DNA of 64,000 bases, from assembly GCF_964204645.1 (NCBI RefSeq), contig NC_134030.1:9265222-9329221 (forward strand), read 5' to 3'. Position 1 is the stretch's first letter, and the number at the start of each line of letters is the position of its first letter. Source of the stretch: Tubulanus polymorphus. Lineage: Eukaryota; Animalia; Nemertea. Shown one piece after another: positions 11,305 to 51,710 of this stretch. A model generated the notes under the pieces. That model saw only the letters and a program-made list of their open reading frames with translations, had not been told where the DNA came from and made no database searches. The translations under genes and the position numbers were made by a program.

Positions 11305-24714
<13,410 letters not shown>

Positions 24715-25392: not shown

Positions 25393-28300
25393 ATGGTTTC
25401 GTCTTTTGTGAGAATATCAGCGATTGTTATGTTATTATTTTCTGCGAAAATAAACGCAAACTCTAAAGCCCGACGCAATTTCATCTCGGTGCCGAAGTTA
25501 CCTGGAAATGAATACTACCAATGTCCAGACGAAGAGACATTGGAAATCAACTGCGCCGGAAAATGCACAAGGCTTGGAAACAAAGATTGTGTGGGATTCT
25601 TTTTTAGTGACCAGAAATCATCCGGTGTTCGGTGCTTTCTGATAATGGAAAGAAAAGAAGATTGTAGCAGAGCACAACAACTAGAAAACGTCAAAGGTTC
25701 CATCTACGTCAATGTTGGTATGTATGTTAAACAGTTATATTAATTCCTTCAAGTAAAGTCGCCGTACATTAGAAACAAATCAGATAATCCTTTATTTCAC
25801 CTTATATTAGTTGAGATTTATTCTGAAATATACACGTAGACCTACATGTAGGATGGAAATTGTTCTGTTTCATTGCCGCCAATCTAACTATCCCAGTATT
25901 TTTAGTGCCGTTTTTTTCATTAGTTCGATTACGGAAACACCGACGAACTTTTCCGATTGCTAGGCATAAAAAAAAAAATTTAATTTTCATTTCCCCCCCG
26001 CCCCTCATTATTAAACGTAGATATGAACATAGAAATAAACAGCTATAACTTTTTCCACTGCCACATAATCCTTTGACATCACGCACAAAAATTGCAGTGG
26101 ACAATGGTGTTCTAATGGTAATATATATTTGTTGGGTTCGTTCAGTGAATAGCGTCTCTTGTAAAATGACGGCGTCAGTTATGTGTGTAGGCAATAAACA
26201 GACAATATTCGGGTATCAAGACGACCTCAAAATTAAGCAAATTTTTATTCATTTTTCAAATTCCACTCCCCGATCACTTCATTCATTCTCCTTTTATTGT
26301 TTTTCTTTTATTGCGCATCCTTTTTGTTTTTGTCTGTTTGTTGTTATTGTTGTTTTCTTCATTTACAATCTTATACTTTTGATCTATGAGGAATAAATTG
26401 AAATTGGATTTGTTTAAAGAAATATTTTTCTTTTTGATTAAACTCCAAAGTCCACCAAATCCGTAATCCAACTTAAAATGTGAAAAATTACGTCCCAAGG
26501 ATAATAAACGAGTAATTGTACGGCTCCAAACTATGTATGTACATCATGGTTTGTGCATATTCCAAAGCGCGAGTGTAGACTATAAATTATTATATTACTT
26601 CCGTTGATATGCGGTGTCGTCTTTTTTCAGATATCGCATACAACATGTCATTGTTAACAGAAGTAACCCCTCAAACAACTACTCATGTTGGTGCAGGCTC
26701 TAGTCTAATGACAACAGAACCTACTGCATCAAAGACTGAATTGACTAGAGGAGCTAGCATCGGAACAGCAACAACCGTAAGAACAACTTCTACACCTCGA
26801 GCTGAATTGACTAGTGGAGCCAGCATGGGAACAGCAACAACTGTAAGAGCGACTTCCACATCTCAGACTGAATCGACTAGTGGAGCTAGCATCGGAACAA
26901 CTACAACTGTAAGAACAACTTCTACACCTCAAGCTGAATCGACTAGAGGGGCTAGCATGGGAACAGCAACAACTGTAAAAACACCTTCCACATCTCAAGC
27001 TGAATCGACGAGTGGCGTCAGCGTAGGAACAGCAACAACTGTAAGAACAACTTCTACACCTCAAGCTGAATCGACTAGTGGAGCCAGCATCGGAACAGCA
27101 ACAACTGTAAGAGCGACTTCCACATCTCAGACTGAATCGACTAGTGGAGCTAGCATCGGAACAACTACAACTGTAAGAACAACTTCTACACCTCAAGCTG
27201 AATCGACTAGAGGGGCTAGCATGGGAACAGCAACAACTGTAAAAACACCTTCCACATCTCAAGCTGAATCGACGAGTGGCGTCAGCGTAGGAACAGCAAC
27301 AACTGTAAGAACAACTTCTACACCTCAAGCTGAATCGACTAGTGGAGCCAGCATCGGAACAGCAACAACTGTAAGAGCGACTTCCACATCTCAGACTGAA
27401 TCGACTAGTGGAGCTAGCATCGGAACAACTACAACTGTAAGAACAACTTCTACACCTCAAGCTGAATCGACTAGAGGGGCTAGCATGGGAACAGCAACAA
27501 CTGTAAAAACACCTTCCACATCTCAAGCTGAATCGACGAGTGGCGTCAGCGTAGGAACAGCAACAACTGTAAGAACAACTTCTACACCTCAAGCTGAATC
27601 GACTAGTGGAGCCAGCATCGGAACAGCAACAACTGTAAGAGCGACTTCCGCATCTCAGACTGAATCGACCAGCAGAGCTAGTATAAGAACAGCAACAACT
27701 GTAAGAACAACTTCCACATCTCAGACCGAATCGATTGGTGGAACAAGCATAGGAACAACTACACGTTTAGAAGCAACTTCCAACTCTCAACCTGAATCGA
27801 CGAGTGGCGTCAGCGTGGGAACAGCAACAACTGTAGGAGCGACTTCTACATCTAGTCCTAAATCGACCAGCGGAGCTAGCACGGGGACAGCTTCAACTGT
27901 AGGAGATGGTGCCAGTACATCGACAGCGATGGCGCCTGGAACCACAAAAACTACTGCAACTATTATGAAAACTGCTTCAACCGTAGGAATTCCTAGTACA
28001 TCGTCAACTGCCACATCGGGACCGACTGATGATTCAAGCAAGGGAACAACTACAACTGTAGGAGCTGGTTTATCGCCAACGACGATGCCTGAAACCAAAA
28101 AAATGAATGCAGCTAGTACGGGAACAATAACGACTGGAGGAGCTTCATCTGGACCGACAAGTGCAGCTAGCATGGGAACAACTGATCGAGCAGTTACGGG
28201 TTCTATCGTATCGACAACGGTAACTCAATCAACTACCGTAAGTAGCATAGGGACAACTACAGCCGTAGGAGCTGGTTCTAGTATATTCACAGCTGCTACC

Positions 28301-29671
28301 TCCCAAACTGACCCAACTAGTGTAGCATCCACGGGGACGACTTCCGCCATAGATGTGGGCAGTAGCGATTCAACAACAACAACAACAACAACAACCAGAA
28401 GTGAAGAATCAACCAGTACAAGTGCAACTATCAAAGCAACAACAAATTCAGCAGGTGTTAATTCTAGCGTATCGATAACTACATCTCAAACAAGCGCAGC
28501 TAACATTGGAACAGTCACAAATGTAGGCGATAGTGCGAGTGTTTCGGCAACCATGTCTACATCTGAAACAACTTCTTGGGAGAATATACCTACAACGTTA
28601 CCAACTACTGCTACAGTGGATGGGGGTACAAGTAAAATAATAACCTCCGCACATCAAAGTACAGTTAGTGCAGATTTGAGCACTGACGCGATAGTTGGCA
28701 CGTCTAAAACTGGAACAACAGAAACTGTGGTATTGGAAACTACCTATTCAAAAATGGATGCTGCGCCAACGGTGCTAACTGACACAGTAGGTACTAAAAC
28801 CCCCTCTAGCATAACAAACACTATTGCTACCACGTCTTCAACTGCCAGCATCAAGACTTCATCAGGGGTAACAAGCCAAGCGATTACTAAATCTGTTTCA
28901 CCAACTGTAACGACAACCGCATCTATAGTATCGTCAACTACAGCTGCTAATCATACGAAACGTTGTGCGTCGGGTTTCAAGAAAGTCACTACAGCCAATG
29001 GTGATTTGGCGTGTTTCAAATTGTTCGGCTGGGATCGTTTATCATGGAACGCGGCGCGTGCGGCCTGCCATCACAACGGAGCCAAGCTGGCCGAACCGCA
29101 AACTGTAGAGATGTTCGACAAACTGGTGTATGAATTTTTCACAGGTTCAGATGCGATAAACCAAACAGGTAACATATTTGGGAAATATTTGATTCTTGGG
29201 TTGCTGGATTATGTAACAACCAGTGATTGTAAGGGTATGCTGTTGCAGCCTGTGTAACATTCTTAATCTATTTATTGACAAAAGTTAGACAAGGGACGCT
29301 TTGCATTTTCCGATGAATCCTATGCATATTTCGTTTTCATAATTGATATGAGCTCTATTATTACCAATGTTTTATTTTGAATAAGACCATGTGTTTTCCT
29401 ATTCTGTTTACTAACTCACCTCATGAATCTTATTTCTTATTGCAAAGAAGCTGTCGGTACTTCACTCATCTGGCTGGGCTTGTTCGATGAAGATAAGTCG
29501 GGACCTGCACCATCGAAGTGGCAGACCACGGGAAAGATGATCGAGTACACAAACCGATGGGATGAAGAAAACCCTATTTCGGGTTGTTCTTGCAAGGGCA
29601 TTCGAAGACCTTCCTACCGATTAGCTGGGGGAAAGTGCAGGGTAATAATGCCATATATTTGCGAACAATAG
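25393..29671 (+). CDS. Array copy A: secreted PAN/Apple-like + long mucin-like stalk (~780 aa) + C-type lectin-like protein. Exons 25393-25717, 26631-29168, 29448-29671
   Basis: Signal peptide MVSSFVRISAIVMLLFSA; Cys pattern C..CAGKCTRLGNKDCVGFFF...RCFL...C; Thr/Ser-rich repeats; CTLD CFKL..SWNAARAAC...AKLAEP...IWLGL...W...C...C..PYICEQ. Both introns are phase 1. Confidence 0.85.
26732..27919 (+). repeat. Coding minisatellite: about 18 x 66 bp (22 aa, QxESTSGASxGTATTVRxTSTx) with a 264-bp four-unit higher-order repeat
   Basis: The variant gactagaggggctagcatggga recurs at 26941, 27205 and 27469 (period 264). Units were counted in the ORF translation. Confidence 0.95.
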
Positions 29672-30104
29672 AACTAATCAATGTTTGATTATTAAGTACT
29701 TCAACATGATGCTGGCTGTTTGTACTGTACAATTTTACACGAATTTTGAACATAAACATAATAATGGAATATTACTCATTTTTGGTCTTAAATATGCCTG
29801 TGGTCTCTGATGTAATAAACAATATCATGCACTTCTGTCTGTTAGTCTGGATTTGCCTTGTATTTTAGTGTCTACGTCAAAGCATGTAATTACGCAGGCA
29901 AGTGATTTGCCAACGAAAGTCATTAGAACCTAACAGCTAACAGCATGATACGCGAATAGACCTTTTTGGTCTTGCGCGGTAAACCGATATGACAATTATG
30001 ATTATTTGATAATTAATAGAACATCGATAGCGTACAGCTACATTTATGATGTGATGAAGTTGATACATAATATCCCTATTACTGTTCTCGCTCTCTCGTC
30101 GGAA

Positions 30105-33100
30105 ATGACACCTACGACGCTGATACAGATGGTTTTACTGGTATCCGCAGCATTTAGCCAGGATCAAGCGGATTTCATTCAGGTCACAGGTTACTCCGAA
30201 AGCGGATATCTATGTCCGATTGATGCGAAAACCGAGGTCCAATGCGGTAGTATGTGTTTAAGGTTAGAAACAGCCAAATGTTTCGGGTTCGCATTTGATA
30301 AAAAGCGATGTTTGCTATTCACACATGCAGCGTGCGTGTCAACAACATGTTTTGAAGATGTCGACATTCCCGTATATATTTCTTCTGATGACGGTAAGGA
30401 GACTTTTTAAGATTTTTGCAAGCTTCAAATATGATCTAGGTCTACAACATTTCATGCCTGCCTCACCCATGTATATGCAGAAAGATAGAGTCTAAGAGGG
30501 AATATCCATAAAAAGAAACGTTTTTCTAACCGAATACTACTCAACCTCTAGACAGAACAACGCATGAAAAAAAAAGTTTTGTGCAAAACGTGTTTTCTGT
30601 TTTGATAAAACCAACGTTTTGTCGTGTGAGTTTGGCTTCAATGGTTTATTTCCAAGTTCTGTGGTTCAAAATCTCATAGATGACAACATCTGTGTGAAAT
30701 GCCCTGATGAATTAATTCGTAGCTTGATTTTCAGACGGTGTATTTGCAAGCTCTTCGATTGCCGCTGTCACCAGCCCAATCTCTGAATCGACCAATTCTA
30801 CGACGTCAGAAGATGCATGTAAATCTGACTTCAGAAGGGTAACGACGTCCGAGGGAGAATCTTCTTGTTTTAGATTGAACGGTTGGTCGGAACCGACCGA
30901 CCGCTTGAGCTGGGACGATGCAGTGTCATTCTGCCAGGATACCGGAGACAAATTAGCCGAACCAGTAACCGTTGAGATGTACGATGAATCTGACCAGCTA
31001 TTCTGTATCTGTTATCTTTTTAATGATTTGGAAAATCTTAGTACACTTACTGTCTTATTTCACCCGAAGAAGAACCGTTTATTTGCACGACAGATTATGA
31101 CCTTGGATGAATACTAGCACAGGCCTAGGTATGACTTCCCAAGAACCTTAGTGTCTGATGAACCACAGGTGGGTACACGTAAGGAGCGTAGACCGACGGA
31201 GATCACTCTTGAAATAACCACTTCCAAGTGGCCGAAGTTATGACCAGCGCGACGGATTAGCTAAGATACTCATTATACGGTCCCTGTTCCTTTTCGTTCC
31301 ATTCCGGGAAGTATCATATGCCAGTTTAAACATTAATTCTACATGAACGGATATACTTCAATCTAATCACGTTTCTAATCACTCATCGCTCGATATTGGC
31401 CATAGTTCAATGAACGGTCATTTGAATAATGAAGATAGGTGTACTTGATCCGGTGGGCGTGTGATATAGGTGATAACGAGATGCGCTCCTATAGTTTCGT
31501 TTGAAATTCATACCAGATAAATCCATAAAATATGTCTATACAGTCTATGTTAGCGGTAATCGGTCATGTTCAAGAACGAATCTTAAATGAGAAGACGCGA
31601 GTTTAGTTCACTGGGATTCTAAAAGATTTTCCCGTTTTAAGGTTCTCGACAATCCACTTCTGATTTTTGAACTGGGTCCTAAGAGGCGAATTCACCGTTT
31701 GATTTGAACTTGAAATATAGAACGAGAAGGATTTTGATGGGACGTTACCCGTTACCTGGGGCATCGACCTCGAAGAGCGCGAGTGCTGAAAGTAAATAAT
31801 GACCGCTGGTGTCCGCCAACGAGCTTTCATAAACAATGTAATGAAACAGAATGTGGAGTCCCCAATATATCAGTGATACTTGTAATATCTTTGGTTTTAG
31901 GTGATGGACCACCTAAACTGACTTGGCTGGGTCTCAAAGACCGAGACGGAAATGGACCAAATTTACCAGTTTGGCAGAGCATAAACACGAGCATCGGTTA
32001 CACAAACCGCTGGGACGACGACCCACAATTTCAAAAAGAATGTATAATTCAATTCAATTCAATCTTTATTCAGCATTAACATTAATAAAACATTGTTTGC
32101 AACTGATACAAATTCGGTAAAATCAAGTATATACATAATAGGAGATAAACAAATAATAAAATGAAGCATAATTAACACTAATTACAGATGAGTTAAAACA
32201 TAATTGAAAATATACAGAACATTAATCGAAGAAATATTAGGACAATGGCAGACCGAGTTTAATAAATTTGGCTAGCTGAACAATGCTGGTTGTAGGGTTT
32301 AGGTTGTCGAAAGTGGAGATTAAACTATTAACGTCTAAGATAGCTATATTTAATTCCTTTCTCAGATTGGCAACTCTTTTACAAGGGAACAAAAAGTGAC
32401 ATTCATCGTCCAACACATTACAAATATTGCACAAACGATTTTCCTTTTCTATACCGCGGTGTCTACCTTTTTCAATAATTAAGCTGTGAGTAGACGTCCG
32501 TAATTTAGCAACAGCATTTCTGAGGTTAAAATCTTTTAGCACTAATAAATATTTTTCTAACTTAAAACTTACTTTAACTGCTTTATAAAAATTATAACGG
32601 GAATGATCACTTGATCTTATGTCCTTATGCCAGAGATCCACAAAGATAGCTGACAGACGCTTTCTAATACCCAGAATAATGCTATTCGAATAATGCCCCA
32701 AGTTGTTCCAAACATTTGAGTACCCTAAATTTGATAGAATTGATTTAACGGTAGATATATAATTGAATTTGCCCTCCCTGTCATCTTCATATTGTTCTAG
32801 AAAAGACAAGTAGATCAATGATTTGCTATTACCCGACGACATAACTGACCTCCAGTACTTCAAAGCTGACATAGTAATCTCAATATAAAGTGGAACCTCT
32901 CCCAAGTCACCAAGAATAGGTAAAATTGGAGCCTTAGAATGAAGACCCATTATGAACCTAAAAAATCTTGACTGCAGCTTTTGCACTACCCATTTGTTAT
33001 ATGGTAAACCCATATCCGTGAGTGACCCATTTGGTTTCTTTAGAAATGACATATAGGGCACAACTCCCCAAACTTCACTACCATACATAACTATCGGTTT

Positions 33101-33475
33101 GAGTAAACTGTTAAAAAGCTGTAGTTGTTGTAGAATACATAAATCCTTGAAACCAGGCATTTTAGTTAGATTGAAAAGCCCTCTTAAACCCTTACTCAAC
33201 AGTGAGTCTTGTAGCAGATTGAATTTGCCATTACAATGGATGTTGAAACCCAGATAGTTGCAACTTTTAACACAATCTATAACATCATCGTTAAAAATGT
33301 AGCTATTTGTGCAGTCTAATTTACCCGCTTTGTTAAATTCAACAATACACGATTTAGGAACATTTACTTCCAGCCCCCAGAATTTACAATAAAGCTCAAG
33401 CTTAGACTTACTAGACAGACATTATCTGGAGGATTGTGTTGGAAACAACGTCCTTTCATCTGCGAACAGTTGTGA
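30105..33475 (+). pseudogene. Array copy B (short-stalk type, close to copy E), disrupted. Exon 1 30105-30393; exon 2 from 30735, truncated at ~30988; exon 3 31901-32046 plus ~33400-33475, split by a LINE
   Basis: Homology to copy E stops after VEMYDE, so LVYEFFTGPSA and the splice donor are missing. Exon 3 breaks after FQKECI and resumes 1.35 kb later as LRLTRQTLSGGLCWKQRPFICEQL*. Confidence 0.85.
32047..33399 (-). mobile_element. 5'-truncated non-LTR retrotransposon (RTE-X-like ORF2 C-terminus) inserted into exon 3 of copy B
   Basis: Open frame from the RT end (YCKFWGLEVNVPKS...NYLG) through LKPIVMYGSEVWG to the CCHC motif KLRTSTHSLIIEKGRH...RLCNICNVLDDECHFLFPC. 3' end has aataaag followed by an (attga)n tail at ~32047-32070. 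Confidence 0.9.
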
Positions 33476-34473
33476 ATTCAAATATATGTACTTTCTCCCA
33501 TTCATTTATTATCAGTTGGAAAGTTTGAATAAGTAATGAAGATATAATAAGTATCGTGTAAATTTGCGAACAAAGATCAAATACATTAAATTTAATGTAC
33601 ACTTTTTGTCATATTCGTGGTAAGTTCTCGTGTATCACTCAACTCCGCAATATCGCTTTCAGCTTCCTGTGTATATTGTGCTGGTTGGTGACGTGTAATA
33701 TTTACCTTTCGAGAGGTGGAAAGCAAAATATACACATTCGGTTTCCTTCGATGCCGTGCTTTAAATGAGTTGCCTGCTCCTTACATGAAATGTTATAATA
33801 TGAACATTCCAACAGAAACCCGATGACTACTTAAGAATACAGACAAGCGATATGCGGTACTACGACTTTTGCTTTAGATAGGGCATACGGCATTGACCAT
33901 TTTTATCAGGAAATTCATCGAAATCAACCATCGTATTTAGAAAAGCATCTTTATATCTCGTATTCGTTAACGCATGAATGCATCTAGAGATTTGCGGGGA
34001 GCATATATTTTGGGAAGGGCAACGTATCAAAAAGTGTGAACCCTAAACATTGACAAATACGATGCATGTTGTTATTTCATTCAGATACATCAGGTAGATG
34101 AAACAAGAAATGATACAATATACACATTTCTACGTTTAAAGTGGGCTACAATTTGTCTGGATATTTTCAATACTTATTACATAACTTCGATTTTCGATAA
34201 TATACAAACAGAAAACACAATATTCTGTACGTCATTGTAAAAACGATAGCACTTCTGTTACTCTAGTTGTTGTGTCTTATTCGACGAATTCCAAGTGTAT
34301 TCCTGCGCGACTGAATGTACTATATCCGGTATCTAACTTCTGAAGTGACGTAACATTTGCACTAATAAACCAATATCCTGACTATCGTGTGAGTTTTGAG
34401 AGCGTACATATTCGCAAATATTGGCACAAGAACATTGTTAATGTGATCCATTCTCAGGTCGGCCACCTTCGGA

Positions 34474-36554
34474 ATGATACATGTAACCGTTTTACAGTTA
34501 TTTCTACTGGTGTCCTCAGCCTTAGGCGAGGACCAGGGTGATTTCGTTCTAGTAACACATTTTCCTAAATGCGCATACCGCTGTCTCAGCGATGCGAGAA
34601 CCGAGGCCCAATGCGGTAGTCTGTGTTTGAGGTTAGGTTTGGCCGAATGTTTGGGGTTCGCATACGATGGACAGCGATGTTCGATACTGACAAACGTAGC
34701 GTGCGCATCGGCGACACGGGAAATGGAATTAAACACCGTCGCAAGATCGATCTACGTAGTCTCTAAATGCGGTAAGAGTATTTCCGATTGTATCTTCGAT
34801 TTTAATGTATGAAATGATTGGGGAGCTGCCCACGCCAGCTATACCCGCCAGACGTCAAGACAAGCACTCATACCTAAATCTACGACGAATTACCCGGTAC
34901 ATGCGTATTCTATTTGAATGTCCCAAATTAAACGATATTTGAAGAGCTCTCCTCGCACCTTCTAACACTGTTCAAATGTCACAATTCCCAAATGCTGTAA
35001 ATAATAGTATCCTAATTAAACTCGCTAGATTTGTAAATATTGGCCTCAAATTACATAAGTAAATTGCATCAATATAGGCCTATGTTGTGTGATTATTTAT
35101 ATTCTATTCTATTTGCATTTCTATTTTGTATGTTTCTTATTAAGTTTTGTAAATCATAGATTAAATTATATTTGCATGAATTCTTGTAAACTCTATGTAC
35201 CGATGTTTTGATTGGAGGGATACGCGAACATATAGACGATTCTATTCTATTCTTACAGTATGACAATTATTTCTCTATCAATCAACTTTGAACAGAATGC
35301 TCCCGAATCCATACATTATCACAATGACCCACCAAATATACTGAAGATTCATTTTCAGACGATTTTTCATTATAGTTTTCATTAGAACTTTATCTATTTT
35401 AAGAGAAAAATTCATTTGACTTTCACTGGTAGAAATTGAACCCGAAAGACCGAGCAACTACCAGCGAACCTGGTGGACCCTCTCTTGCCATAAGCGGAAT
35501 CCTCGATTGCCGCAGTAGCGTCGGTTATCTCCCGTAAACCCTAGGAAATTTGGTTATTCGATAGCATTCACAAATGCTGTGTTTTGGCTGATTGAATCGT
35601 ATATGAAGTATGATTTGGATATTGACGACTGAAATTAAATTTTCTTTTGGAATTATCTTCCTATCAATGATTGAATGCGACATATCTATCAACGATATCT
35701 TCAGATTCCCTGAAAACTACAGCAACCACAACTGAAAGTCAATTGGCTACAACAGCCGTACAGAATACCACTTCCAGCCATCCATCGACTACTGATGCGA
35801 CCAGTCCAAGGCCTACTGAAATCACCAATCCGCCTACTACCGCTGAGTCCAGTCCACCGTCTACGAGCACCAGTCCTCTGACTACCGCATATAGCAGTCC
35901 ATCGACCAGATTCATGAAAACTAGTTCAGTCAACAAGCCTTTGTCATGGACAGCAACTAGTCTACCATCAAAAACATCCATCGCAACGAAGGTAGCAACA
36001 ATTGCATGTCAAACTGGCTTCAAAAGAATAACAACGCCGGGTGGTGCTTCTTCCTGTTTCAAATTAATGGGTTGGTCGACAACAAAGACCAATGGTTTGA
36101 AGTGGGGAAATGCAGTTACCGCCTGCAGTAAAATTGGATCCAAACTGGCCGAACCAAAAACTGCTGACATGTTCGATAAGCTTGTATACGAATTTTTCAC
36201 TGGTCCATCAGCGGTGCCTAATCATTCAGGTAAGTTCATATTCAGTAACTGACGGATGGAGAAAGTTCTTCCTTTAACTGTATTTCTTGTATCCACGCGG
36301 ATGAATTAAATGGAAATACGTATCTCTTTTTAGGGAGACATCTGCGTGTTGTTTGGCTAGGTTTGATAGACCGAACTGGATCACAGTCTGGTTTACCAGT
36401 TTGGCGGAGTACAAATACGAAACTTGGATACTCAAACCGCTGGCACACTTATCCATATTCCAAGAGAAAGTGTAAAGGCATCAGAATACCTAATTACGGA
36501 TTATCTGGAAGCGGTTGCAGAAGGCGTCGCCCTTACATATGCGAGCAATTATAA
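34474..36554 (+). CDS. Array copy C: signal + PAN/Apple-like + ~100-aa Thr/Ser/Pro stalk + basic CTLD. Exons 34474-34771, 35705-36229, 36334-36554
   Basis: In-frame phase-1 splicing. Motifs QCGSLCLRLGLAECLGFAYDGQRC, SCFKLMGWS, KLAEPKT, VWLGL, PYICEQL*. Confidence 0.88.
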
Positions 36555-37380
36555 GAAAAAAACGAAAAAACGAAAGATCTGCTTGTGAACAGTAAACAAT
36601 TTCAAAATTTCCGATTTCAACAATTCGTACGATTATACCGGTACATACACGCATTCAATGTTGATATCTAAATCTGAAGCAATTACGATTTAACCGGAAC
36701 GAAAGAGGCAGAGTACTAAATGACCGCTGAACTTGAGAGAGCTATCCGACGTGTGGATAAAACAGCGCTTCGATTCATCATTGTTTCTTCGGGTTTGCCA
36801 CAATTCCGACTTTGGCACACGTGTTTTTCAGCATATCAAACCGAGGGATTTTTCGGTAAATTGATAAAGAGCGTTTCCATTTAACCATTTCCATGAGTGT
36901 TTTTAATTTGATAATTTTAGGGATATCTTGGTTTTCACGGAGATACTGGCATTAGTGAATATTGTCATCGTATTTTATGCATTAATATTGAATATACATA
37001 CTCCCATTGGAAGACAATTTTCAAGTAGAAAAAACCACCGAGTCTATGGTTCGCGCAAATGAATACGATATAGCTTCGATTTCCGATATTTACTTTTATT
37101 AACACAAAATACGATATACACGTATGGCCAATACTTATCGGAGTAAAAATATAATACGATAGGTCTTCTGCTGTCATCCATGTCATTGGTCCTAATCGAT
37201 GGATTTCAAGTGTGCTTCCGAAACCTCCTCAAACTTCCGAAACTCCGTAAACGGTAAGAAATCCAATAATAAACGACGATGGTTTAATTGTGTTAAGTTG
37301 TGTCGGCATATTCGCTTGAACATTGATTTGAAAAAAACTTGGTAAAGCTAGTTGACATTACCGGCCACGCTTCTGTCGGA

Positions 37381-38944
37381 ATGGCACCAGTAGCGTTGTT
37401 ACAGTTTATTTTGCTGATATCCTCAGCTTTAGGTGAGGATCGGGGTGATTTCGTTCTAGTAACGAGTTATCCCGAACGCGCACACCGATGCCCCAATGAA
37501 GCGAAAACCCAGACTCAGTGTGGTAGTATGTGTCTAAGGTTAGGACCAGCTAAATGTTTGGGGTTTGCGTTTGATGAACAGCGATGTTTGATTTTTACAA
37601 ACGCAGCGTGCGCCTCAGACACGCAACAGGAAGTGCATTTAAACGCGGATACAAGATCTATCTACATTATCACAACTGTCGGTGAGTAATTTCATATTCA
37701 CTGTATATACGTGTCACATTCTGTACAAGGAAGCAGTTGCATATAGCTATCGTATCATCATATAACGTCAAAAAATCAACGAAACATAGTTTACCTTAAT
37801 TCAATTGTAGTATTTGTAATCTAACCAACATTGGAGAACTACAATATATACACATTTTCACAGCTATTGCGATTTTGGTAATTCTACACATTTTTCAGTG
37901 ATACTTTTAAGCTAAAAGTGATATACATATATTCTGAATAGGTCTTGGTCATTTGATTGATATGATGTTTTTAGTTTAACTTTTCCGCGCTCACGTACGT
38001 ATTCGAAATATCTTCAGACTCTACAACAATAACTACTACCACTACTGTGACTACCTCTGCAATTACCAATCAATCGGTCGTGGCGAATGCTACCGGTTCA
38101 ATACCTTCCAGTGCAACTGACTCAGCGACTACTGTAGCCACCAATTCGCATACAACCACAGCCACCAGCCCACTGGCTACCCCAGTTACAAGCCCACCAA
38201 TTACCACAGGCACCAGCCAGTTGGTAACTACAGAAAGTCCACATACTGCTGAAAACACCAGTCCACCGACAACCAGCGGCATTAGCTCAACCAACCACCA
38301 ATCAACATCTCAAACTGATCCACCATCAACTACACCGATTGATAACACGATTACTTCTCAGCCTACAAATGCATGTCTACCTGGCTTTAAAAACATAACA
38401 ACGCTAAGCGGTGCTACATCGTGTTTCAAATTGTTTGGTTGGTCAGTAGAAAGAGGCGATGGTTCGAAATGGTTACCGGCAATTCGTGCCTGCAGTGATG
38501 TTGGAGCCAAATTAGCAGAACCACAAACTGTCGACATCTTTGATAAACTAGTCTATGAATTTTTCACAGGTCCATCAGCGGTGTATAATTATTCAGGTAA
38601 GATACAGTACATCACTGAACTGAAGGGGAACATATTATTTTCGACAACTGAATTTCTTGTAGTGTCCCTACACACGCCAATTGATTTAAGAATTAAAGTA
38701 TCATTATATATTTCTTTCAGAAACACATCTGCGGCTTATTTGGCTAGGTTTGATAGACCTAGATGGATTAGAACCCAATTTACCTGTTTGGCAGAGTACA
38801 AATGCAACAATTGGATACACAAATCGCTGGGACGTCGACGAACTGAATTACGAAAAAGAATGTATAGGAATCAGAAGACCAGTTCTTAAACTATCACCGG
38901 GTAATTGTAACAGGCGACGCCCTTACATATGTGAGCAACTGTAA
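37381..38944 (+). CDS. Array copy D: ~119-aa stalk. Exons 37381-37681, 38018-38596, 38721-38944
   Basis: Same architecture, intact frame, canonical splice sites. Confidence 0.88.
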
Positions 38945-39285
38945 GATAGAGTGAAAACTCGGTGACCAAATGAATGTCTGCAAGGATTTATGCGCAATAT
39001 ACAGTTACTGTCTCTTACTGATAGATATCTAAATCTGAAACGGTTAGATCGTCTGCACGGGAATAAAACGACTGTTGGACTTAATTCGAGTAGTTTGACA
39101 ACCGTGTATGCGAAGTGATCGATTCAATTCATGCCAATCATTCACACCACTTCATTATATTTGCTCGATTAAGAAGATGCATGTCAGGAAGGGCACGTGG
39201 ATAAAGTTATTATCTACATAACGCACGAATAAAAGATTTTTTGAAATCCTCGACACTGCAGACAGATTTTCATGCGTTCATGGAC

Positions 39286-39715
39286 TACCTGTCTGTCACA
39301 CCTGCTCTCCGTGCGACGTTTTGGTCCGTAATATCGTTAATGATCAATTAATCTGTGAAAATTATGCATCAATTTGTTCAGTAAGATATTTGCATTCAAA
39401 AATTAATCATGAATTGGCATAAATTTGTTTGTGTTTTCATCTATCGGCGATTGTATACCTAGCATACGCTCGCGTAATGCTGAAAAACGGCTTTTTTGGT
39501 CGGTCACGTGGCGCCGCCTACTGTATTTTGTTATGCTAAAGAGAAGGTGATGACGTCACTGTAACGTTTTGTTTATCATTAATTAATTTATTGTGGGATT
39601 TTATTCATATCGTTTTATCACGGATATTGTGATCTTCAATTGATTCACGTCACTGTAACGTTTCCGAGCGTCCGCGGAGCGGATTTTTAAGCATTACGCG
39701 AGCGCACTAATCTAC
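39286..39715. repeat. Dispersed repeat (probable non-autonomous DNA element) with a second copy at ~53480-53935
   Basis: Shared blocks gaattggcataaatttg...gctgaaaaacggctttt...ggtgatgacgtca...gcgtccg.ggagcg...gcattacgcgagc, plus ctgtctgtcacac matching gtgtgacagacag in reverse. Confidence 0.7.
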
Positions 39716-40808
39716 TTAAGTTCTTTAAGATCATTCATTATATTTTGATAATGTTGTTTCTTCTTTATTGTATAATCCAATAATGTATGTAAAACGTTAA
39801 GGCACAATAAAGATTTTATTGAATTGAATTGAATTGAATTCATTAAATAATCATCATTCAATCAATCACTTACAGATGTATTGTATGGTATTGTTTTGGG
39901 TTCGATACAATGTTTATAGTGGAGCAATAAGCTATACTGAAACTGAAAATTTCATGAAAATCTCGACTCGATTTTTTCTTTCACAAGGATTATCGTACGC
40001 TCCTAGGACAACCGTTGAATCCCGTGCTTAACGACAAAATATTCTTCTACTGCCTTGTAAAATTAAAAGTGATGACTACATGATACCAAAACACATTCGA
40101 TTTTCGATATTTCATTCTGAGATAAACAAAAGAAACAGCCGTTACATCTTTGTAATTGTCTTCTTTCTCAACCGTCACTTGAAGTCTCTTCTGACTTGTG
40201 GTACAATAAACCAATACATATCACCAATGATTTCAGATTGAGTTTCATTTCCTTAAAAGGTGTATACGTATATTCATACAGACTTTTTTCCGAGAATCGT
40301 GTTTCTTTTTTGTCAAAAATTGACTTCACGCATTTTATGTTTTTTTTCTCACCATTATTTATGCAATGTACGAGTATCTTTAACGTGTAACGTACATACT
40401 GTTTAACCTGTTCAACTTTTACACTGCTAAGTTGAGGGCATGTATAATATAAAAATTCATATATAGACTTCATAGTCTTATTGAGGTTCATATGGAATAT
40501 CTTGGTTTAAAATGTGCCCAGGGGTCAGGTTCATGAAAAAGTGTAAGCTTAAAACGATTTAGTTGGAATTGAATGTGAATGTGTCTCTTAATGTAATAAA
40601 CATAACACGCAATTCTGTTACGGTGTGGTTTCGTCCTGCATTCAAATTTCAACGTCTCTTGATTGCCATCGAAAATCAATAGAAACGATATCTCGCGGTT
40701 GTTTGATTATTAATTGATTATCGATGGCGTACAGTTACATTTATGATGTGATGATGAACTTTATAAAGTTTATACACATTTCCCATTTATTGGTCTCTCG
40801 CATCGGTA

Positions 40809-43183
40809 ATGCCACTAATGATTCTGCTGCAGTTATTTTTACTGGTATCCGTTGTATTAAGCCAGGACCAGGCGGATTTTATTCAGGTTACAAGTAATTA
40901 TGAAAACGGATATCTATGTCCGAATGATGCGAAAATCGAGGCCCAGTGCGGTAGTATGTGCTTACGATTAGGAACAGCCAAATGTTTGGGGTTCGTATTT
41001 GATAAACAGCGATGTCTGATATTCACACACACAGCGTGCGCGTCGCCAACACGGTTTGAGGATATCAATGCACCCGTCTATATTTTCCCTAAAACCGGTA
41101 AGAGACTAAAAAGATTTTGACGCCGTAAAAACCATTACGATAATGTTCATATACACTGATACCTTGTATGCGTTATTTAAGGGGTTTCTGTGTTAGTTTA
41201 TGTGCACAACGTCATCAATATTGGCGTTTCGAAATAACAATTACAATGATAATTGTGAATTTTGGCGTTTACGTTTTAACTACTTATATTTCGTAACTTA
41301 AAATTTTGATAAATTTTTGAGAGGATGTGCACTACATTATCAATATATCGGGGCTAGACTGGTTGTCGGTGAATTCAACTAAGTTATCGGTAGTCAACTA
41401 AATAAAAATAAACTAATCGTAATTGTACTAGCCTCAGCAAACTAACTAAAAAAGCTTTAAAAAGATTTAAATCAACATTGTGAAAATATAGATTAATCGT
41501 AAGCTTGATTTTCAGATGGCGCATCAACTGGCTACTCGATGGCTGTGACCACCTCTGAATCGACCAATAGCACAAATTCTACGGCGTCAGAAGATACATG
41601 TAAATCTGACTTTAGAAGGGTAACGACGTCCGACGGGAAATCTTCCTGTTTTAGATTGATCGGTTGGTCGAATGCGACCGAACGCTTGAACTGGAACGAC
41701 GCAGCGACCTACTGCCAAAGTACGGGAGACAAATTAGCCGAACCACAAACTGTTGAGATGTACGATGAACTCGTATATGAATTTTTCACAGGTCCATCAG
41801 CGGTTACTGTTCCTTCAGGTTAGTGCGACCATCAATTCTGCATTAACCGATATGCTTTATGTTAGTTATATATAAAGTAGAACTCTGAACTGTAACTTAT
41901 TACAAAATAAACGCCAAAATTCACAATTGTAACTGCTATTTTGACACGCCAATATCGATGACGCAGTGCACATCGAGTGACACACGGAACGCCTATTTAC
42001 TTATAACTTGTTATTCAATTAACTGTTCACCTTTGTCATTTGAATTATGTATGTGGTCCTACTCGACATGGCGGTCATTCAATATATATGAAGACAAGAT
42101 CCGCTCCGATAGTTTAGATTTAACGATTTAAATTCATAGCGAATCAATTCAATAAATACTATTACAGCTTAGTTAATAAACTATAGAGTCTAGATTGTAT
42201 GTCAATGTTCATACTTATCAGTCCTGTTCCACAGAATCGAGTCTTATGTTAAGACCATAGTATTGAGAATCAATGAAGTTATTCTGGCTTGAATATATCG
42301 ATAATTGAATTGAACTGACCGGCAACCAGTCCAGGCCCGATATTTTGATGACGAAGTGCACATCCTCTCGAAAATAATGATCAAAATTCATAAAAAAACA
42401 AATTAAGCGTTATGAAATATATTTAGTTCCAAAAAATCAGAAATGTAATAGTTATTTTGACAACCAGTCTTAAGTCCCGGGTGACGGGAGAAGAAAATAT
42501 AGATATGAAATATATCTAATGACAAAATAAACGCCAAAATTCACAATTGTAACTGCTATTTTAAAACGCCAATATTGATGACGTAGTGCATATCGACTCA
42601 CACGGAACCCATAATATGTTTCAATATATATAAACATTATTGTAACGGTTTAAACGGCGTCAAAGATCATACAAATCATACCGGCTGAAAGGTACTTCAA
42701 TCGTTGGAACCGGGGCATGAGAGGGCCGCCTTCGTTTTAGATGGCGTTTCTAAAATCCTTCCACCGTGTGATTCAAATTATAGGCCTATGCAATATTAAT
42801 TATTGACTCTGGAAAGGCACCAAACGTGTTCAGCGTCTTCCTACAAACTTTCATGAACAGTGAGTGGGAATAAAAAATGGATAACACGAAAAACAAGAAA
42901 ATTTCGAAAACGATAAACCTACAAACAATCGTAAATGAAAATACCTTTCTTTTTAGGAAATGCAGGTACGCCTAAAGTAATTTGGCTGGGTCTCCGAGAT
43001 GAAGATGGAAATGGAGAAACTACACCATTTTGGCAGGTTATAGGCACAAGCATCGGATACACAAACCGTTGGGACGCAAACCCACAATTTGAAAAATACT
43101 GTATGGGCCACAGACTTACCAGCAACAAATTATCTGGGGGATTATGTGGAACTCAACATCCTTTCATCTGCGAACAATTGTAA
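40809..43183 (+). CDS. Array copy E: short ~28-aa stalk. Exons 40809-41097, 41516-41818, 42957-43183
   Basis: Same architecture, intact; closest paralogue of pseudogene B. Confidence 0.88.
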
Positions 43184-43830
43184 ATTAAAATAGAACTATG
43201 CACTTTCACCATTTAATTTTCGATTTTTGTTTTTAGTTCAGTTAAATAGACCAGCCGCGCTAATAAAAGAGAAATGATTTGCCGTACAGCTTTCTATGAA
43301 CGATTGCTGACGAAATGGCCAGAATGCCTCGAGTTAACTGACCACGTGAAATATGAAATGCGAAAATCATTCGTATCAGTTATTGAGATGTATTGAGTAA
43401 AATGGCAATCCTTAACTCTTGTTAGATGTGGATATCTTTGATCGATACATGACGTTATCTAAATGATATATAATCGTCGTTACTAAACAAAATATAGCAA
43501 TTACTCGTACGACATTCATAATGTTGATAATAATTTTGTTTTGTTTTTCTTTATTGCATTTCTCTTTTTTCTTCTTCACTTTTCTCTGTTGAGGAACCTG
43601 TTTTATGTAAACTATTTCTAAGTTTCTACAGACCCCTCCAAGTCCAATTTACTGTATTTTGTATTATACTATTATACACGTATGCTGTGAATCATATTTG
43701 AAAAAATAAAGCATTCCTTCATTGAAAAAGAAAAATGATGATGATGATGATGATGATACGACAGATGTAGAAAGACTATGTTTCATTTTGGTTTTCATAG
43801 ACAAGCGACTGAATGATATCAATGAAGTGA

Positions 43831-43984
43831 AAAACCCACGATAAGATGAAAAAAAAAACTAGGAGAGAATCTGACGTTTCGACTCAAATCGATGAGCCAT
43901 TTTCAAAATCAGATTCTAAAAATGGCTCATAGATTTGAGGCGAAACGTTGGATTATCATAGTTTTTCATCTTATTTAGGGTTTT
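43831..43984. mobile_element. Palindromic Penelope-like element remnant
   Basis: Inverted arms aaaaccc...ataagatgaaaaa...gacgtttcgactcaaatc.atgagccatttt / aaaatggctcat.gatttgagg.cgaaacgtt...tttttcatcttat...gggtttt. This resembles tail-to-tail PLE pLTR fragments. Confidence 0.6.
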
Positions 43985-44999
43985 AACCTTACGAAGTTTC
44001 ATGTCACAAGCTGTGAAGGAAAAACAAACTACGTAGGAGTGAGTGGCTTTCCTATATACTGAAAATCTTAGATATGACAAACGAGTATGAATGCAAAAAT
44101 CTATAAAATGTTTGTTTCCCTTCAGTCACTCAATGATTACGGTACTCCCGTTTTCCTTAATTCTAAGGGCAAACAGCTACGTAATCATGCAGTCTCGCTT
44201 TATACAGCAAGAGTCAAAGTTTCTTTAACTTATACTAAATATATATTGTTCAATGCCCGCTTTAAACCACTGTAAATCGATTCACAAGTATTCACGTATT
44301 TCTTCCCATTTAAACTGTGTCTGTGTGAATTCTGTAACTGCATGAATGCGTGTATCGTGAAGGAACATGTTTTTGTGCTCTGCGGCAAATGTAATTTTTT
44401 GGAGCAATAAACTAATTGTAATAATCAAATTCCCTTAAATCATCTGATGAACCCTAACTTGCCTTAGCTCTAGTCGTTTTATATTAGTCCAGTTTCTGGT
44501 CATCTTCCTTAGAAAGATGTCGATTAGTTTAAAACGTTTGGCGATCTTATTTTGAGACAAATCAGAATTCGTATTCCAAAAATCATTCTTTTTCTCTCAT
44601 GTCCCTATACGTAGGACACTCATCCGTAGTTTACTTAATTTCGATTGATATTGGATGCAATCTACGCGTAAAATAATTCTTCTTAAGTTGAAAAAATCGC
44701 CGAGTCTATGGTTTGCAGAAATGAATACGGCGTGGCTTCGATTTTCAATATTAACTTTCGTAAACATACAATAGGCCTTCGTTGTTTTGTATATATGGCT
44801 AATACCTATTGAAGTAAAAAACCGATAGCACGCTCTTCCTGTCATTCTCTTCCGTATTTGTTTCCTTGGACGGACTTCACGCGCGCTACCGCTCACGAAA
44901 AAAACTTCCTCTGCTTGGTAAACGGTTAGAAAAACCGATATTCACGAATATGATTCCGTGATTTGTTCAGTAAATTCCCATGGTCACGCTATGATCGGA

Positions 45000-45772
45000 A
45001 TGGCACTGGCAATGTTATTACCGTTGTTTCTGCTGGTATCCTCAGCTTTAGGTGAAGATCAAGGTGACTTCGTCCTAGTAACGAGTTATCCCAAACGCGC
45101 ATTCCGATGTTTTAACGACGCGAAAAGTCAGGCTCAATGCGGTAGTGTGTGTTTAAGGTTAGGACCAGCCAAATGTTTGGGGTTTGCATTTGATGAACAG
45201 CGATGTTTGGTTTTTACAAACGTAGCGTGCGCGTCACCCACACATCAGGATGTGAAATTAAACGCCGGTAAAAGATCTATCTACATTATCGCAAATGTCG
45301 GTGAGTTATCAAGTACACCTATCATATTCTATTCTAAGCTATTTTGATGTCGAGCTATTTTGAAATTCGACATAATAAGTCAAATTTTGACATCAATAAC
45401 TCGATTTTCGGTAAAAAAATAACTCGAATTCCGACATGATAATCGGGAAATTATTTTTACTGTAAATATTTTGAATGCAATTCATTTTTCACAGCAGATT
45501 TATTCTAACCTGCATACGAATATATTTTCATGGAAATTTAATTTCTATGACGAACTTGTTTTGTCAAGAAATATGTTTATACAGCTACCACGAATTTATA
45601 GCGTTATTGCGAATTTGGAAATTCTATAAATCTTTCAGGGATATATACTTTTTCGATGAACATGATGTATGCTAAAAAGTTAAAATCTGATAAGATTTTT
45701 CCGCGCTAATGAAGTGATAACTTTGCATGTATTAACAATATTTTCAGACCCCACAACAACTGCAACAACAAT

Positions 45773-45803
<31 letters not shown>

Positions 45804-46676
45804 GCAACCACCAATTCTGCGACCAGTAATCAATCGGTCATCACAGCCATGGCGAATGCTACCGGTTCTATAACTTCCAATGCGATTGATCCCAATGCAA
45901 CTAATACAGCCACCAATACACATACAACCAGCCCACTGACTACCCCAGACACCAGCCCACCAATAACCACAGACACCAGCCAGCTGACAACTACAGACAG
46001 CAGTCCACATACGACTGAAAACACCAGTCCATCGACAACCAACGATATAAAGATTAGTACAACCAACCACCAATCAACAACTCAAGTTGATCCACCATCA
46101 ACTACATCGACTGTTAACCCGATTACTACACAGGATAAAAATGCAATTCTACTTGGCTTTAAAAGAATAACAACGCTAAGCGGTGCTTCTTCGAGTTTTA
46201 AATTGATGGGTTGGTCAATAGACAAGGCTGATGGTTCAAGGTGGAATAAGGCTGTTACCGCCTGCAGTGATATTGGATCCAAACTAGCCGAACCAAAAAC
46301 TGCTGACATGTTCGATAAGCTGGTCTATGAATTTTTCACAGGTCCATCAGCGGTGACTGATCTTTCAGGTAATTTCATATTCAGTAAAACCGACGCGGCA
46401 AACATATTTTCTCCCACACGCCAAATGATTTACAAATTATCGTAATATCTTTTAGAAGATCATCTGAAAATTATTTGGCTAGGTCTGAAAAACCTAGATG
46501 GATCACAACCCGGTTCGGTTTGGCGAAGTACAAATACTACAATTGGATACACAAATCGCTGGGACGAAGAAAAACCGAAGCTTGGAAAAGAATGTACAGG
46601 AATCAGACGACCACGTTTTAAGCTCTCAGGGGAGGGTTGTAAGAAGAAACACCCTTACATATGTGAGCAACTGTAG
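45000..46676 (+). CDS. Array copy F: ~133-aa stalk with an (ACT)n poly-Thr run. Exons 45000-45300, 45748-46368, 46456-46676 (alternative ATG at 44991)
   Basis: Exon 3, which is not in the ORF track frame, reads EDHLKIIWLGLKNLDGSQPGSVWRSTNTTIGYTNRWDEEKPKLGKECTGIRRPRFKLSGGGCKKKHPYICEQL*. Confidence 0.88.
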
Positions 46677-47708
46677 GATGAACAAAAAGCCCGAATGAAT
46701 TCCTGCAATGATTTGTGAGCACAGTTAACTGTCTCTTCTGATATGCAATTATGAAACGTTTAGGTCGCGTGCGCTACTGTTGGACTCAATTCGAGTACAA
46801 TGTATTTCGAATCCGTCTTTGCAAAGTCATCGGCTTCATCGATTCCGCTTTACTATACTTGCCGGATAATCAAAGATGATACACGTTTGTAAGAGCGCGC
46901 GTGGGATGCACGAAAAATAATTTTTGTCGTGACATATTCATTTTAAGCTAGTACTATACACGTATAAACATGTATAATCATGATAGCTTGATTTTTGAAA
47001 TCTTGGACACTACACACAGATTTTCATTTAATCTACATAGGTACTTACATATATTTATTACTTCTTATTCAATATTGTAAATAGACCTTTGTACAGAAGT
47101 GTCATGGGGACCTATCCTAACAAAATTTTCGAGGTTAATTCCGAGTTTGTAACTCGGAGTAAACTAGTTTTCTAAGTTAAAAGGTTTCGAAAGATGTTTT
47201 CAAATAGATATATCCCCAGCACGCTTCCGTACTATATTGCTTTGTGTTCATAGTGGGGCAATAGATAAATTGAATTGACGTGAATTCTCGACTTTATCTT
47301 AAACTGTATCTTTAACAACCGTTGAATTCTGCGCTGAACTGCAATAGCACTTCTACGCTAGAAATATAGGAAGACATTTTGGCCCATCTTTATGTACATT
47401 GTATGATTATTTCCTTCCGAGGACTACGTAGCATTGGAATACATTCGATTTCGATGAAGCGATATTTTTGTCTTTGGAGTACATGTACATATACTGGAGT
47501 ACGCCGATGTAGAAGTTACGTCGATAGCGTCATTGTGATAGTATGTTCTCAACCGTCACTTAAAAATCTTTCGTCCGACTTATGGCACAATAAACCAATA
47601 TCACAAGTGATTTCTTGGGTTTTGTTTTACCTAACTGTATTCATATACATCCGGGATCTCTTTAACTTGCTGAAGTTAGTTGGCATTGCCGGTCACGCTG
47701 TCATAAGA

Positions 47709-49332
47709 ATGGCACTACTAAAATGTTTACGGTTAACTCTACTGGTATCCTTAGCAATGGGCTATGACGCGGGTGACTTCGTTCTAGTAACGAGTTATCC
47801 CAAACTCGCATTCCGATGTGCTAATGATGCAAAAACGGAGACTCAGTGCGGTAGCATTTGTTTAAGGTTAGGACAAGCCAAATGTTTGGGGTTTGCATTC
47901 GATGAACAGCGATGTTTGAGTTTTACAAATGTAGCGTGCACCTCACCCACGCAGCAGGACGTGGAACTAAACGCCAATAAACGATCAATTTACATTTTCT
48001 CTAATATCGGTAAGTTATTCATTATTCGATGTGATTAAATCAGCTTAAAATGAGATATAAATCCATAATATACAATCTATATTTAATGTGGTCATAATAT
48101 GAGGTTGTTGAAATAGGTTTGTTTCGACGCTTTAAGATACACTCAACTTATTACTGAAAGAAATGCCAAGTTAATACTGTCAGATCCTGCTATCATGTTT
48201 GTTCATAGACTGCTGCAAAGTGTTTTCGTATCTATGTTTTGTATTCTTCTTTTTTACACTTAATTCTAGTTTCTTTCCTTTTTATTGTGAAAAACCAATA
48301 ACGATATCCGTATATTTCGGTGAATATGAAATTGAAATTGAATATGTATTCTTCCTTTTAAAACCTCCCTCAAAATTCTCAGATTATTGATCCGAGTATT
48401 ATCAGCTTCCAGGACAACAACAACAACAACAACAACAACCGCATCCGGAAATTTACTGACGAATGAAATAACTACCGACGCCAGCTCACCAACTGGCAAG
48501 CATACATCCCAGTCGACAACTGCAGGAGACGCTACTTCACCGACAACCACGGGCTCTAGCTCAACAACCTCAGCCACCACCCCACTTACGATTATTGGTA
48601 CCAGCCAACCTACAACCACTGTTACAAGCCCACTAACCACAACGATGTCTACGGACGCGAGTGCTCCAACTACCAGCGACGCCGGCACTTTTACTGCAGT
48701 CAACCATCCATCGGGATCTGAACCAGGCAGTCAACCGCCACTTTCTTCAACCGCTGAATCAATCACTTCAGTGACAACATACGTTTGTCAACCTGGCTTC
48801 AAAATGATTACGGCATCAGGTGGAACTTCGTCGTGTTTCAAATTAGTTGGTTGGTCAGCGGAAACCATTGGCTTGGTTTGGAAATCGGCACTCGCCGCTT
48901 GCAGCGATATTGGAGCCAAACTGGCTGAGCCAAAAACAATTGATATGTACGATAAAGTGGTCCACGAATTTTTCACAGGGCCATCAGCGGTGCCCATCTA
49001 TTCAGGTAATCTATACTTACATTTACAATCGTCACTAATCCTCATAATATTTAGCGACGCCAAATACACAGTCGATTTTCTTTTCATATCTGAATTAAGG
49101 AACACATTTGGGAGTCATCTGGCTGGGTCTAATAGACCGAGATGGAAAAAATCCCGGTCTACCGGTTTGGCAGAGCCAAAACGAAAGCATCGCTTACACC
49201 AACCGCTGGGATACGATCGACCCACAATTCGATAAACAATGCATGGGAATTGGAAATACGGGATTTAGATTATCTGGAGGTGGTTGTCGGAAGAAACACC
49301 CATACATATGTGAGCAAGTGAAGAAAAACTAG
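47709..49332 (+). CDS. Array copy G: ~127-aa stalk. Exons 47709-48009, 48406-49005, 49100-49332
   Basis: Same architecture and intact frame. The acceptors (attatcag, aattaag) are weaker than in the other copies. Confidence 0.82.
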
Positions 49333-49390
49333 TTCCGACTGAATCTTATAATCATTTATTCGTAAACAATGACATCTATTTACCGCACTA

Positions 49391-49467
49391 AAGGCTGATT
49401 TTCACGAGCGGTTTTCATCTAGCTTTTTCCAGCTGCCGCAGGAAACCGCTCATGAAAACCAGCCTTA
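49391..49467. repeat. Short hairpin/MITE between the convergent copy G and GT32 stop codons
   Basis: aaggctgattttcacgagcggtttt ... ggaaaccgctcatgaaaaccagcctt inverted arms. Confidence 0.7.
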
Positions 49468-49522
49468 ATACTTCTAACATGAAGACTGAAAATACAAAAG
49501 AAACATTTTTTCGGTTTAGAAA

Positions 49523-50698: not shown

Positions 50699-51710
50699 GG
50701 TCGGCGTTATGACGAATTATCCTGAATTTAGAAAAGAAAAATCACTAGTGACGTGTCATTCAGCAATGCAAATATAGGTTATTATTATTTTCATTAGGTT
50801 ATATTCCATTTCAAAATGCCCAAGATTTCACGATTTACGACGTAAATTTATGAAACTTGATTATCGTAGATATCCATCTGTACATATTCAGTTATTGAGT
50901 ACACAGAATGAGAACGGATTGCTAAATTTAGGAAGCTATTGTTTCATAGGCATGAAAAGGATGCAAACATGTGTATCATTTAGTTTAACCTTAGAGCAGT
51001 TATTGCGCTAAGGTTAAACGTATACACACATGAACCTGTGACATCAATAAGCCTTTTAGTAGTAGGCCTAAAACGTATTCTTATCATATCCTCATCTTCA
51101 ACGTCAAATTGACGAGTGCCGTTACATATACGGGGTTCTAATATTCACATTTTTCAAATTCATTGCACCGATATTGAAATTTATCGAATGAAATTAAGGA
51201 CCATGGTGGTCTATTTCAATAAACTCAAAACTTTAGTCTAAAATAAACTTTACATTACTGTATAGAGCAAATGTATATTATTAAGTAATGAACAATCATG
51301 GAAATGGTAATTCGAAAAAGAAAACTATTTTGATCAATGACACTGAACATTTTTCTTGACATGCGTTTATTTTACAGATATTCCATACGTTACTTACTTG
51401 TCTATGTATTTCGCTTAAATAACAATTGTATCGCCTGCGTATAATGCCCCCCAAATAACTCGCTTAGACGTGTCTCTAGCGTCTACTATACTGTAAGTTT
51501 GACCACCGCGAGTCCTGAACAGTCGAGCGAGCACAATGACCAAACGAGTAATTTTTAATTCTATTGATAACCGTTGTTACTTTGTATTCGTCGCATGGTA
51601 ATAAAAACAAACAACTGACACTTACGATTTGTTTCTCGTTTTGGATACCGATGAAGTTTAAAACCGTCTAGAGACAGTTCGTAGAGGAGCCGTGTCAATC
51701 GGGTTTAGAA

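Follow-up and report, generated by a model that had tools for sequence, protein, structure and literature searches.

Does a row of similar, lectin-like genes in the nemertean Tubulanus polymorphus encode a new kind of two-headed secreted protein, and what might such proteins do? The genes occupy positions 25393-49332 of a 64,000-nucleotide stretch, here called the window (NCBI RefSeq assembly GCF_964204645.1, contig NC_134030.1, positions 9,265,222 to 9,329,221). A first-pass annotation had described them as seven paralogues of one three-exon, phase-1/phase-1 plan, each coding for a PAN/Apple module, a Thr/Ser stalk and a C-type lectin-like domain, hereafter CTLD. As judged from sequence, the array of seven co-oriented units (g1 to g7) is a lineage-specific tandem expansion, confined to one locus, of a stalked PAN/Apple-CTLD gene without the canonical Ca2+/sugar site. 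In silico splicing of g1 and g3-g7 gave GT-AG introns in phases 1/1 and single open frames of 272-1028 residues, with in-frame alternative acceptors possible at a few introns, in keeping with the proposed plan for these six. The plan fails for g2, which is broken; the array therefore comprises six intact genes and one pseudogene, as follows (window coordinates).

25393..29671, plus strand: g1; exons 25393-25717, 26631-29168 and 29448-29671; 1028 residues, stalk 778 residues
26736..27901, plus strand: tandem repeat in the g1 stalk; 66-bp (22-residue) unit, 17.7 copies, 264-bp higher-order unit
30105..33478, plus strand: g2 pseudogene; an intact exon 1 (30105-30393), exon 2 from 30735, exon 3 in pieces at about 31901-32045 and 33404-33478
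32046..33403, minus strand: 5'-truncated fragment resembling a long interspersed nuclear element (LINE) in g2 exon 3; 320-residue open reading frame, short 5-bp-repeat tail at 32046
34474..36554, plus strand: g3; exons 34474-34771, 35705-36229 and 36334-36554; 347 residues, stalk 101 residues
37381..38944, plus strand: g4; exons 37381-37681, 38018-38596 and 38721-38944; 367 residues, stalk 119 residues
40809..43183, plus strand: g5; exons 40809-41097, 41516-41818 and 42957 (or 42966)-43183; 272 residues, stalk 28 residues
45000..46676, plus strand: g6; exons 45000 (or 44991)-45300, 45748-46368 and 46456-46676; 380 residues
47709..49332, plus strand: g7; exons 47709-48009, 48397 (or 48406)-49005 and 49100-49332; about 380 residues

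Database searches and structure predictions were run per exon, and the joined models were used for alignment, for ratios of nonsynonymous to synonymous substitution (dN/dS) and for local comparison with the window and with a second locus of the same genome, L073. Profiles of exon 1 and of the CTLD N-terminal half each returned exactly seven matches genome-wide, all inside the window (E 1e-27 or better). Beyond these units no match was better than E 0.006; that is, these searches found close copies nowhere else in the 268-Mb genome. An exon-3 profile found eight pieces rather than seven because one exon 3 is split. The similarity among the units is not due to chance, given paralogue profile E-values of 1e-27 to 1e-41 and dN/dS below 1.

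The members g3-g7 share 55-80% identity in the PAN module and 49-66% in the CTLD; for g1, the most divergent member, the values are about 30% and 50%, respectively. Both domains are under purifying selection. Pairwise dN/dS was 0.14-0.40 for PAN and 0.18-0.75 for the CTLD (dS is saturated for some g1 pairs), and no 15-codon window had a ratio of nonsynonymous to synonymous differences (pN/pS) above 1, and the earlier description of a diversifying family is thus not borne out. Conservation within the CTLD is highest in helix alpha2 and the YEFFTG loop that follows it (pN 0.07-0.11); the loops after WLGL are near neutral (0.91-0.97), and the usual ligand loops drift. The history of the array is one of birth-and-death under purifying selection. 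The CTLD tree survives a test with the exon-1 data, an agreement consistent with whole-unit duplication, and the weakly supported exon-1 tree is rejected by the CTLD data (approximately unbiased (AU) test, p 0.012). Domain shuffling among paralogues, hinted at by dS, was considered and set aside; since the exon-1 data accept both trees, shuffling is not shown.

The pseudogene g2 is closest to g5. Its match to g5 exon 2 ends at 30988, ahead of the YEFFTG stretch, the exon end and donor are missing, and at about 32046-33403 the minus-strand LINE-like fragment cuts its exon 3 in two. The 320-residue reading frame of this fragment resembles the C-terminal end of a non-long-terminal-repeat ORF2; it had no reverse transcriptase match in Pfam.

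Exon 1 encodes a hydrophobic, signal-like N-terminal segment followed by a module of ~80 residues with six invariant Cys (the g3 module has eight, one pair extra). The core C-x3-C ... C-x-x-F ... C pattern is invariant in 7/7 units and aligns to the PAN domains of HGF and EtMIC5 at E 0.2-0.4. Pfam PAN_1 scored 13-16 bits in three of the seven members (best E 0.0065), below the curated score of 21.4 bits, and PAN_3 (CW/PAN-3) gave no match to the module at E up to 10. In an AlphaFold2 model (predicted local distance difference test (pLDDT) 86), strands at 6-8 and 16-20, a helix at 25-35 and strands at 40-45, 50-54 and 71-73 follow one another, and the helix packs on a small antiparallel sheet, as expected of a PAN fold. 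Among known structures the model is matched best by PAN domains of plasminogen, HGF, MANEC, S-receptor kinase (SRK) and microneme proteins (Z up to 6.1, template modelling (TM) score about 0.55-0.65), with the N-domains of plasminogen and HGF in the lead (Z 5-6, TM 0.55-0.61), and the language-model neighbours of the module are PAN_1 clusters. These structural scores are middling but their ranking is consistent; the modelling thus supports a PAN/Apple-like fold, in agreement with the original assignment. In the classical Apple domain a third disulfide joins the N- and C-terminal ends, whereas the extra Cys pair of the array module sits at residues 18 and 58 of 76, away from the domain ends; the model reports no bonds. 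The next-best genomic match to the array PAN profile (E 0.009) is L078 (C6:4.650-4.653 Mb, minus strand), where two near-identical exons, each coding for a signal peptide plus a PAN-like module, stand in tandem.

In the C-terminal domain WLGL and four core Cys are invariant in the six intact genes, Pfam Lectin_C matches reach 22.7 bits, CTLDs in the PDB are matched as well, and exon 3 has a perlucin-like cluster as its nearest named neighbour in the atlas, all of which upholds the CTLD assignment. Intron 2 splits the domain, and the N-terminal half folded alone gave the expected beta-beta-alpha-alpha order (pLDDT 55). Only g6 lacks the long-form Cys pair, with both N-terminal Cys replaced together; the g1 CTLD carries seven Cys, so that one is predicted to be unpaired. 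When the array CTLDs were aligned to an EPN-type CTLD of the same genome, the WND position read L-S/A-G/P in the six intact genes and the site-2 loop held neither EPN nor QPD (g4 has an EPN, but just after WLGL, outside the site-2 loop). Because EPN/QPD and WND motifs are required for canonical sugar binding (PMC7618208), we regard the domain as a CTLD but not as a canonical Ca2+-dependent lectin. Its net charge ranges from -4 to +18 across the paralogues. The g3 CTLD (36007-36551), at +18, carries an Arg-rich C-terminal patch unlike its paralogues and is a candidate polyanion binder.

The stalks of the six intact genes are Cys-free, contain 47-51% Thr+Ser and measure 28-778 residues. As Cys-free, Thr/Ser-rich, low-complexity stretches they match the sequence definition of a mucin-type Pro/Thr/Ser (PTS) region, and they are probably O-glycosylated and extended. 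The only strongly hydrophobic 19-residue window in the proteins is N-terminal (Kyte-Doolittle (KD) 1.5-2.1; elsewhere at most 1.3). Hydrophobicity windows and C-termini revealed no transmembrane or glycosylphosphatidylinositol (GPI)-type tail in the six intact models, which finish at ICEQ(L). The proteins are thus predicted to be secreted; on this point, as on stalk composition and the missing anchor, the first-pass annotation was right.

How might these parts work together? We put at about even chances a reading in which the array encodes secreted two-headed glycoproteins, with an extended stalk between the heads, that bridge mucus or coat components through a non-canonical CTLD site. The stalk, O-glycosylated and extended, would keep the PAN head at a distance from the CTLD head. 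The latter may bind proteins or charged glycans, or self-associate, via a non-canonical surface, for which the near-invariant helix-alpha2/YEFFTG stretch or basic patches are candidates. The PAN head may bind a protein or glycan partner, on the model of the HGF, kallikrein and microneme PAN domains. The proteins would then act as non-covalent bridges in extracellular mucus, coat or matrix secretions; spacer length and head charge vary among the paralogues. Secreted CTLD-bearing proteins are present in limpet adhesive mucus (PMC7333891). The Ca2+-independent CTLDs of LOX-1 and NKG2D use secondary, dimer or basic surfaces, and NKG2D is without a canonical Ca2+ site (PMC7618208); both are vertebrate type II membrane receptors, and the likeness is one of analogy only. 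A cross-linker role is plausible, and several points weigh against it. The g5 stalk is only 28 residues long; a long spacer is thus not a feature of all members. Gel-forming mucins polymerise covalently through vWD/C8/TIL and cystine-knot domains, whereas these are absent from the array models and Pfam scans. The structural Z of the PAN module is at most 6.1, with Foldseek E-values above 0.7. The splicing of the genes is modelled in silico, and we infer their expression site and every binding and location step from sequence.

The alternative that survives best, unlikely as we hold it to be, is that the proteins are soluble agglutinins or opsonins of innate recognition, in which the Ca2+-free CTLD would engage microbes, the PAN module would recruit host cells or proteases, and pathogen pressure would drive birth-and-death. 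The tandem arrangement, which includes a pseudogene, the variation in head charge and in loops, and the presence of RegIII and tetranectin among the weak PDB sequence matches of the CTLD all fit this idea, and invertebrate CTLD families are often immune (PMC10140915). The absence of any window with pN/pS above 1, the presence of only six copies at one locus and the missing canonical sugar site argue the other way.

We consider it decidedly unlikely that the proteins build the matrix of one particular product, be it a tube, an adhesive, a mineral matrix or the coat of an egg or cocoon, and that the CTLD, lacking the Ca site, serves there for matrix binding or self-assembly. The mechanism overlaps that of mucus or coat bridging, and the perlucin label of the nearest named exon-3 cluster, which would favour a matrix role, is automatic; a low-complexity stalk joined to a CTLD does resemble matrix proteins, and g1 has, besides, a long stalk with a repeat in it and one Cys predicted to be unpaired. 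An improbable proposal is that the PAN and Ca2+-free CTLD heads self-assemble via alpha2/YEFFTG, so that the stalks, 28 to 778 residues long depending on the paralogue, would determine the mesh size of a mucus or coat gel without vWD/cystine-knot chemistry. Such stalk-length-tuned self-assembly would, if true, be a distinct way of gel building.

It is very unlikely that the proteins belong to a venom or to a defensive secretion and bind prey or predator proteins as snaclecs do. The best PDB sequence matches of the exon-3 profile are indeed snaclecs (E about 1e-4), and leech anti-platelet PAN proteins are among the fold matches. The snaclec matches are at generic-CTLD level, however, the only likeness seen to these domain-swapped, disulfide-linked alpha/beta heterodimers; a long glycosylated stalk would be atypical, selection is purifying and not accelerated, and the animal has no known venom.

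The weakest alternative, to which we give almost no credence, is that exon 1 is a stand-alone PAN mini-gene and exons 2-3 belong to another gene, so that no dumbbell exists: no RNA junctions were seen, but the exon-1 donor lies at an identical phase-1 GT in 7/7 units, the read-through tails past it are unconserved, exon 2 has neither its own start nor its own signal, every one of the six joined models remains in frame, and a PAN-CTLD family elsewhere in the genome has the same exon plan. The fixed donor, the unconserved tails, the lack of a start or signal in exon 2 and the fact that neither domain has a dN/dS as high as 1 give strong, if indirect, support to the joining of exon 1 with exons 2-3. 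The three sequencing runs that contain the locus behave as DNA, with contigs that span introns and no splice joints, and the sole possible RNA run yielded no contigs matching the locus. One DNA-like run covers 44760-50750 evenly and thereby supports the assembly there.

How new is the family? A search of the PAN profile against 1.84 billion representatives gave no match, and word-based searches with the g7 PAN module and the g4 CTLD N-terminal half were blank among proteins whose length is 0.55-1.75 times that of the query. Three generic animal multi-CTLD loci, none with a PAN exon, were all that a metagenome scan recovered, and literature searches did not find the PAN-mucin-CTLD architecture in any paper. 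At the sequence level the family is thus lineage-specific, as had been proposed, with no relatives of the PAN module or CTLD N-terminal half found beyond generic CTLDs. A glycosyltransferase encoded next to the array, on the same 23-Mb contig, is present in the searched protein collection and the array proteins were not found there, which suggests that they are un-annotated. To call the array an undescribed system, however, was overstated, since proteins that pair PAN with a CTLD have been described (PMC5297725) and a canonical signal peptide-PAN-CTLD family of the same exon plan exists in this very genome:

C8:2113699-2115500 (L073:4699-6503) and C8:2.26 Mb (L074): stalk-less signal peptide-PAN-CTLD genes with EPN and W-x-D motifs

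Like the array genes, the C8 genes, which lie on another chromosome, have three exons in phase 1/1, with introns after PAN and after helix alpha2, and the two share an LAEP-x-T...D-x-L helix (hhalign 92.7%); unlike them, they have no stalk and retain the EPN + W-x-D site. Shared descent is plausible from these features, but the PAN modules cannot be aligned by sequence, and common descent of the whole gene is therefore unproven. Further copies of the C8 family occur at L075 and L076, with only the PAN exon within the stretch examined. The genome as a whole has undergone a large PAN expansion (at least 130 Pfam PAN_1 matches, and at least 99 Lectin_C matches).

Outside this genome, the 16 class IV CLEC genes of C. 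elegans combine 1-2 CTLDs with 1-2 CW/PAN-3 modules (PMC5297725). They resemble the array in joining a PAN-family module to a CTLD in a lineage-specific expansion, whereas the array has no PAN_3/CW Pfam match, a long Thr/Ser stalk and no sequence kinship that we could find. A secretory lectin of the rotifer A. ricciae has a long Thr/Ser low-complexity region ahead of a C-terminal CTLD (PMC8878817), as in the array, and an N-terminal PAN module is unreported for it. A molluscan ESM Atlas cluster (431 residues, 53 members, Lectin_C in 74% of members) has a model that compares with the array PAN model at TM 0.65, but no sequence-level match to the array.

The array sits between a SMARCC-like gene and a single-exon GT32 glycosyltransferase, and the window contains these conserved or adjacent genes:

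about 8008-8340, plus strand: HOATZ-like, conserved neighbour
about 11950-22500, minus strand: SMARCC-like (SWIRM-associated domains), conserved neighbour
49523-50698, minus strand: GT32/DXD glycosyltransferase in one exon, tail to tail with g7
about 59120-59470, plus strand: PHD-finger exon resembling KMT2C/MLL3, conserved neighbour

A functional link between the array and the GT32 gene was rejected as unsupported because this gene belongs to a genome-wide set of about 35 copies, mostly without introns, with clusters on C11 and C12; in a word-based search it had no outside homologue at E 1e-20. Short high-copy repeats between and within the array genes (about 45390-45430, 47120-47185 and 49410-49460) show very high read depth and inverted joints and are possibly fragments of miniature inverted-repeat transposable elements (MITEs). 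On the same chromosome, about ten co-oriented homeobox matches at C6:5.32-5.88 Mb probably represent an intact Hox cluster, as would fit a bilaterian. The assembly yielded no COX1.

Taken together, the family is real and lineage-specific and has apparently not been described before, a stalked, Ca-site-less variant of known invertebrate PAN+CTLD proteins. The surprise is modest, since lineage-specific tandem arrays of domain mosaics are common in invertebrates and PAN arrays are many in this genome. The array adds an apparently un-annotated family to the invertebrate repertoire of secreted PAN/CTLD proteins, and it offers a within-genome comparison of a canonical, EPN-type PAN-CTLD protein with a stalked form without the Ca site. 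If the heads do bridge mucus components, these proteins would be a compact system in which to study how gels or adhesives assemble without covalent links.

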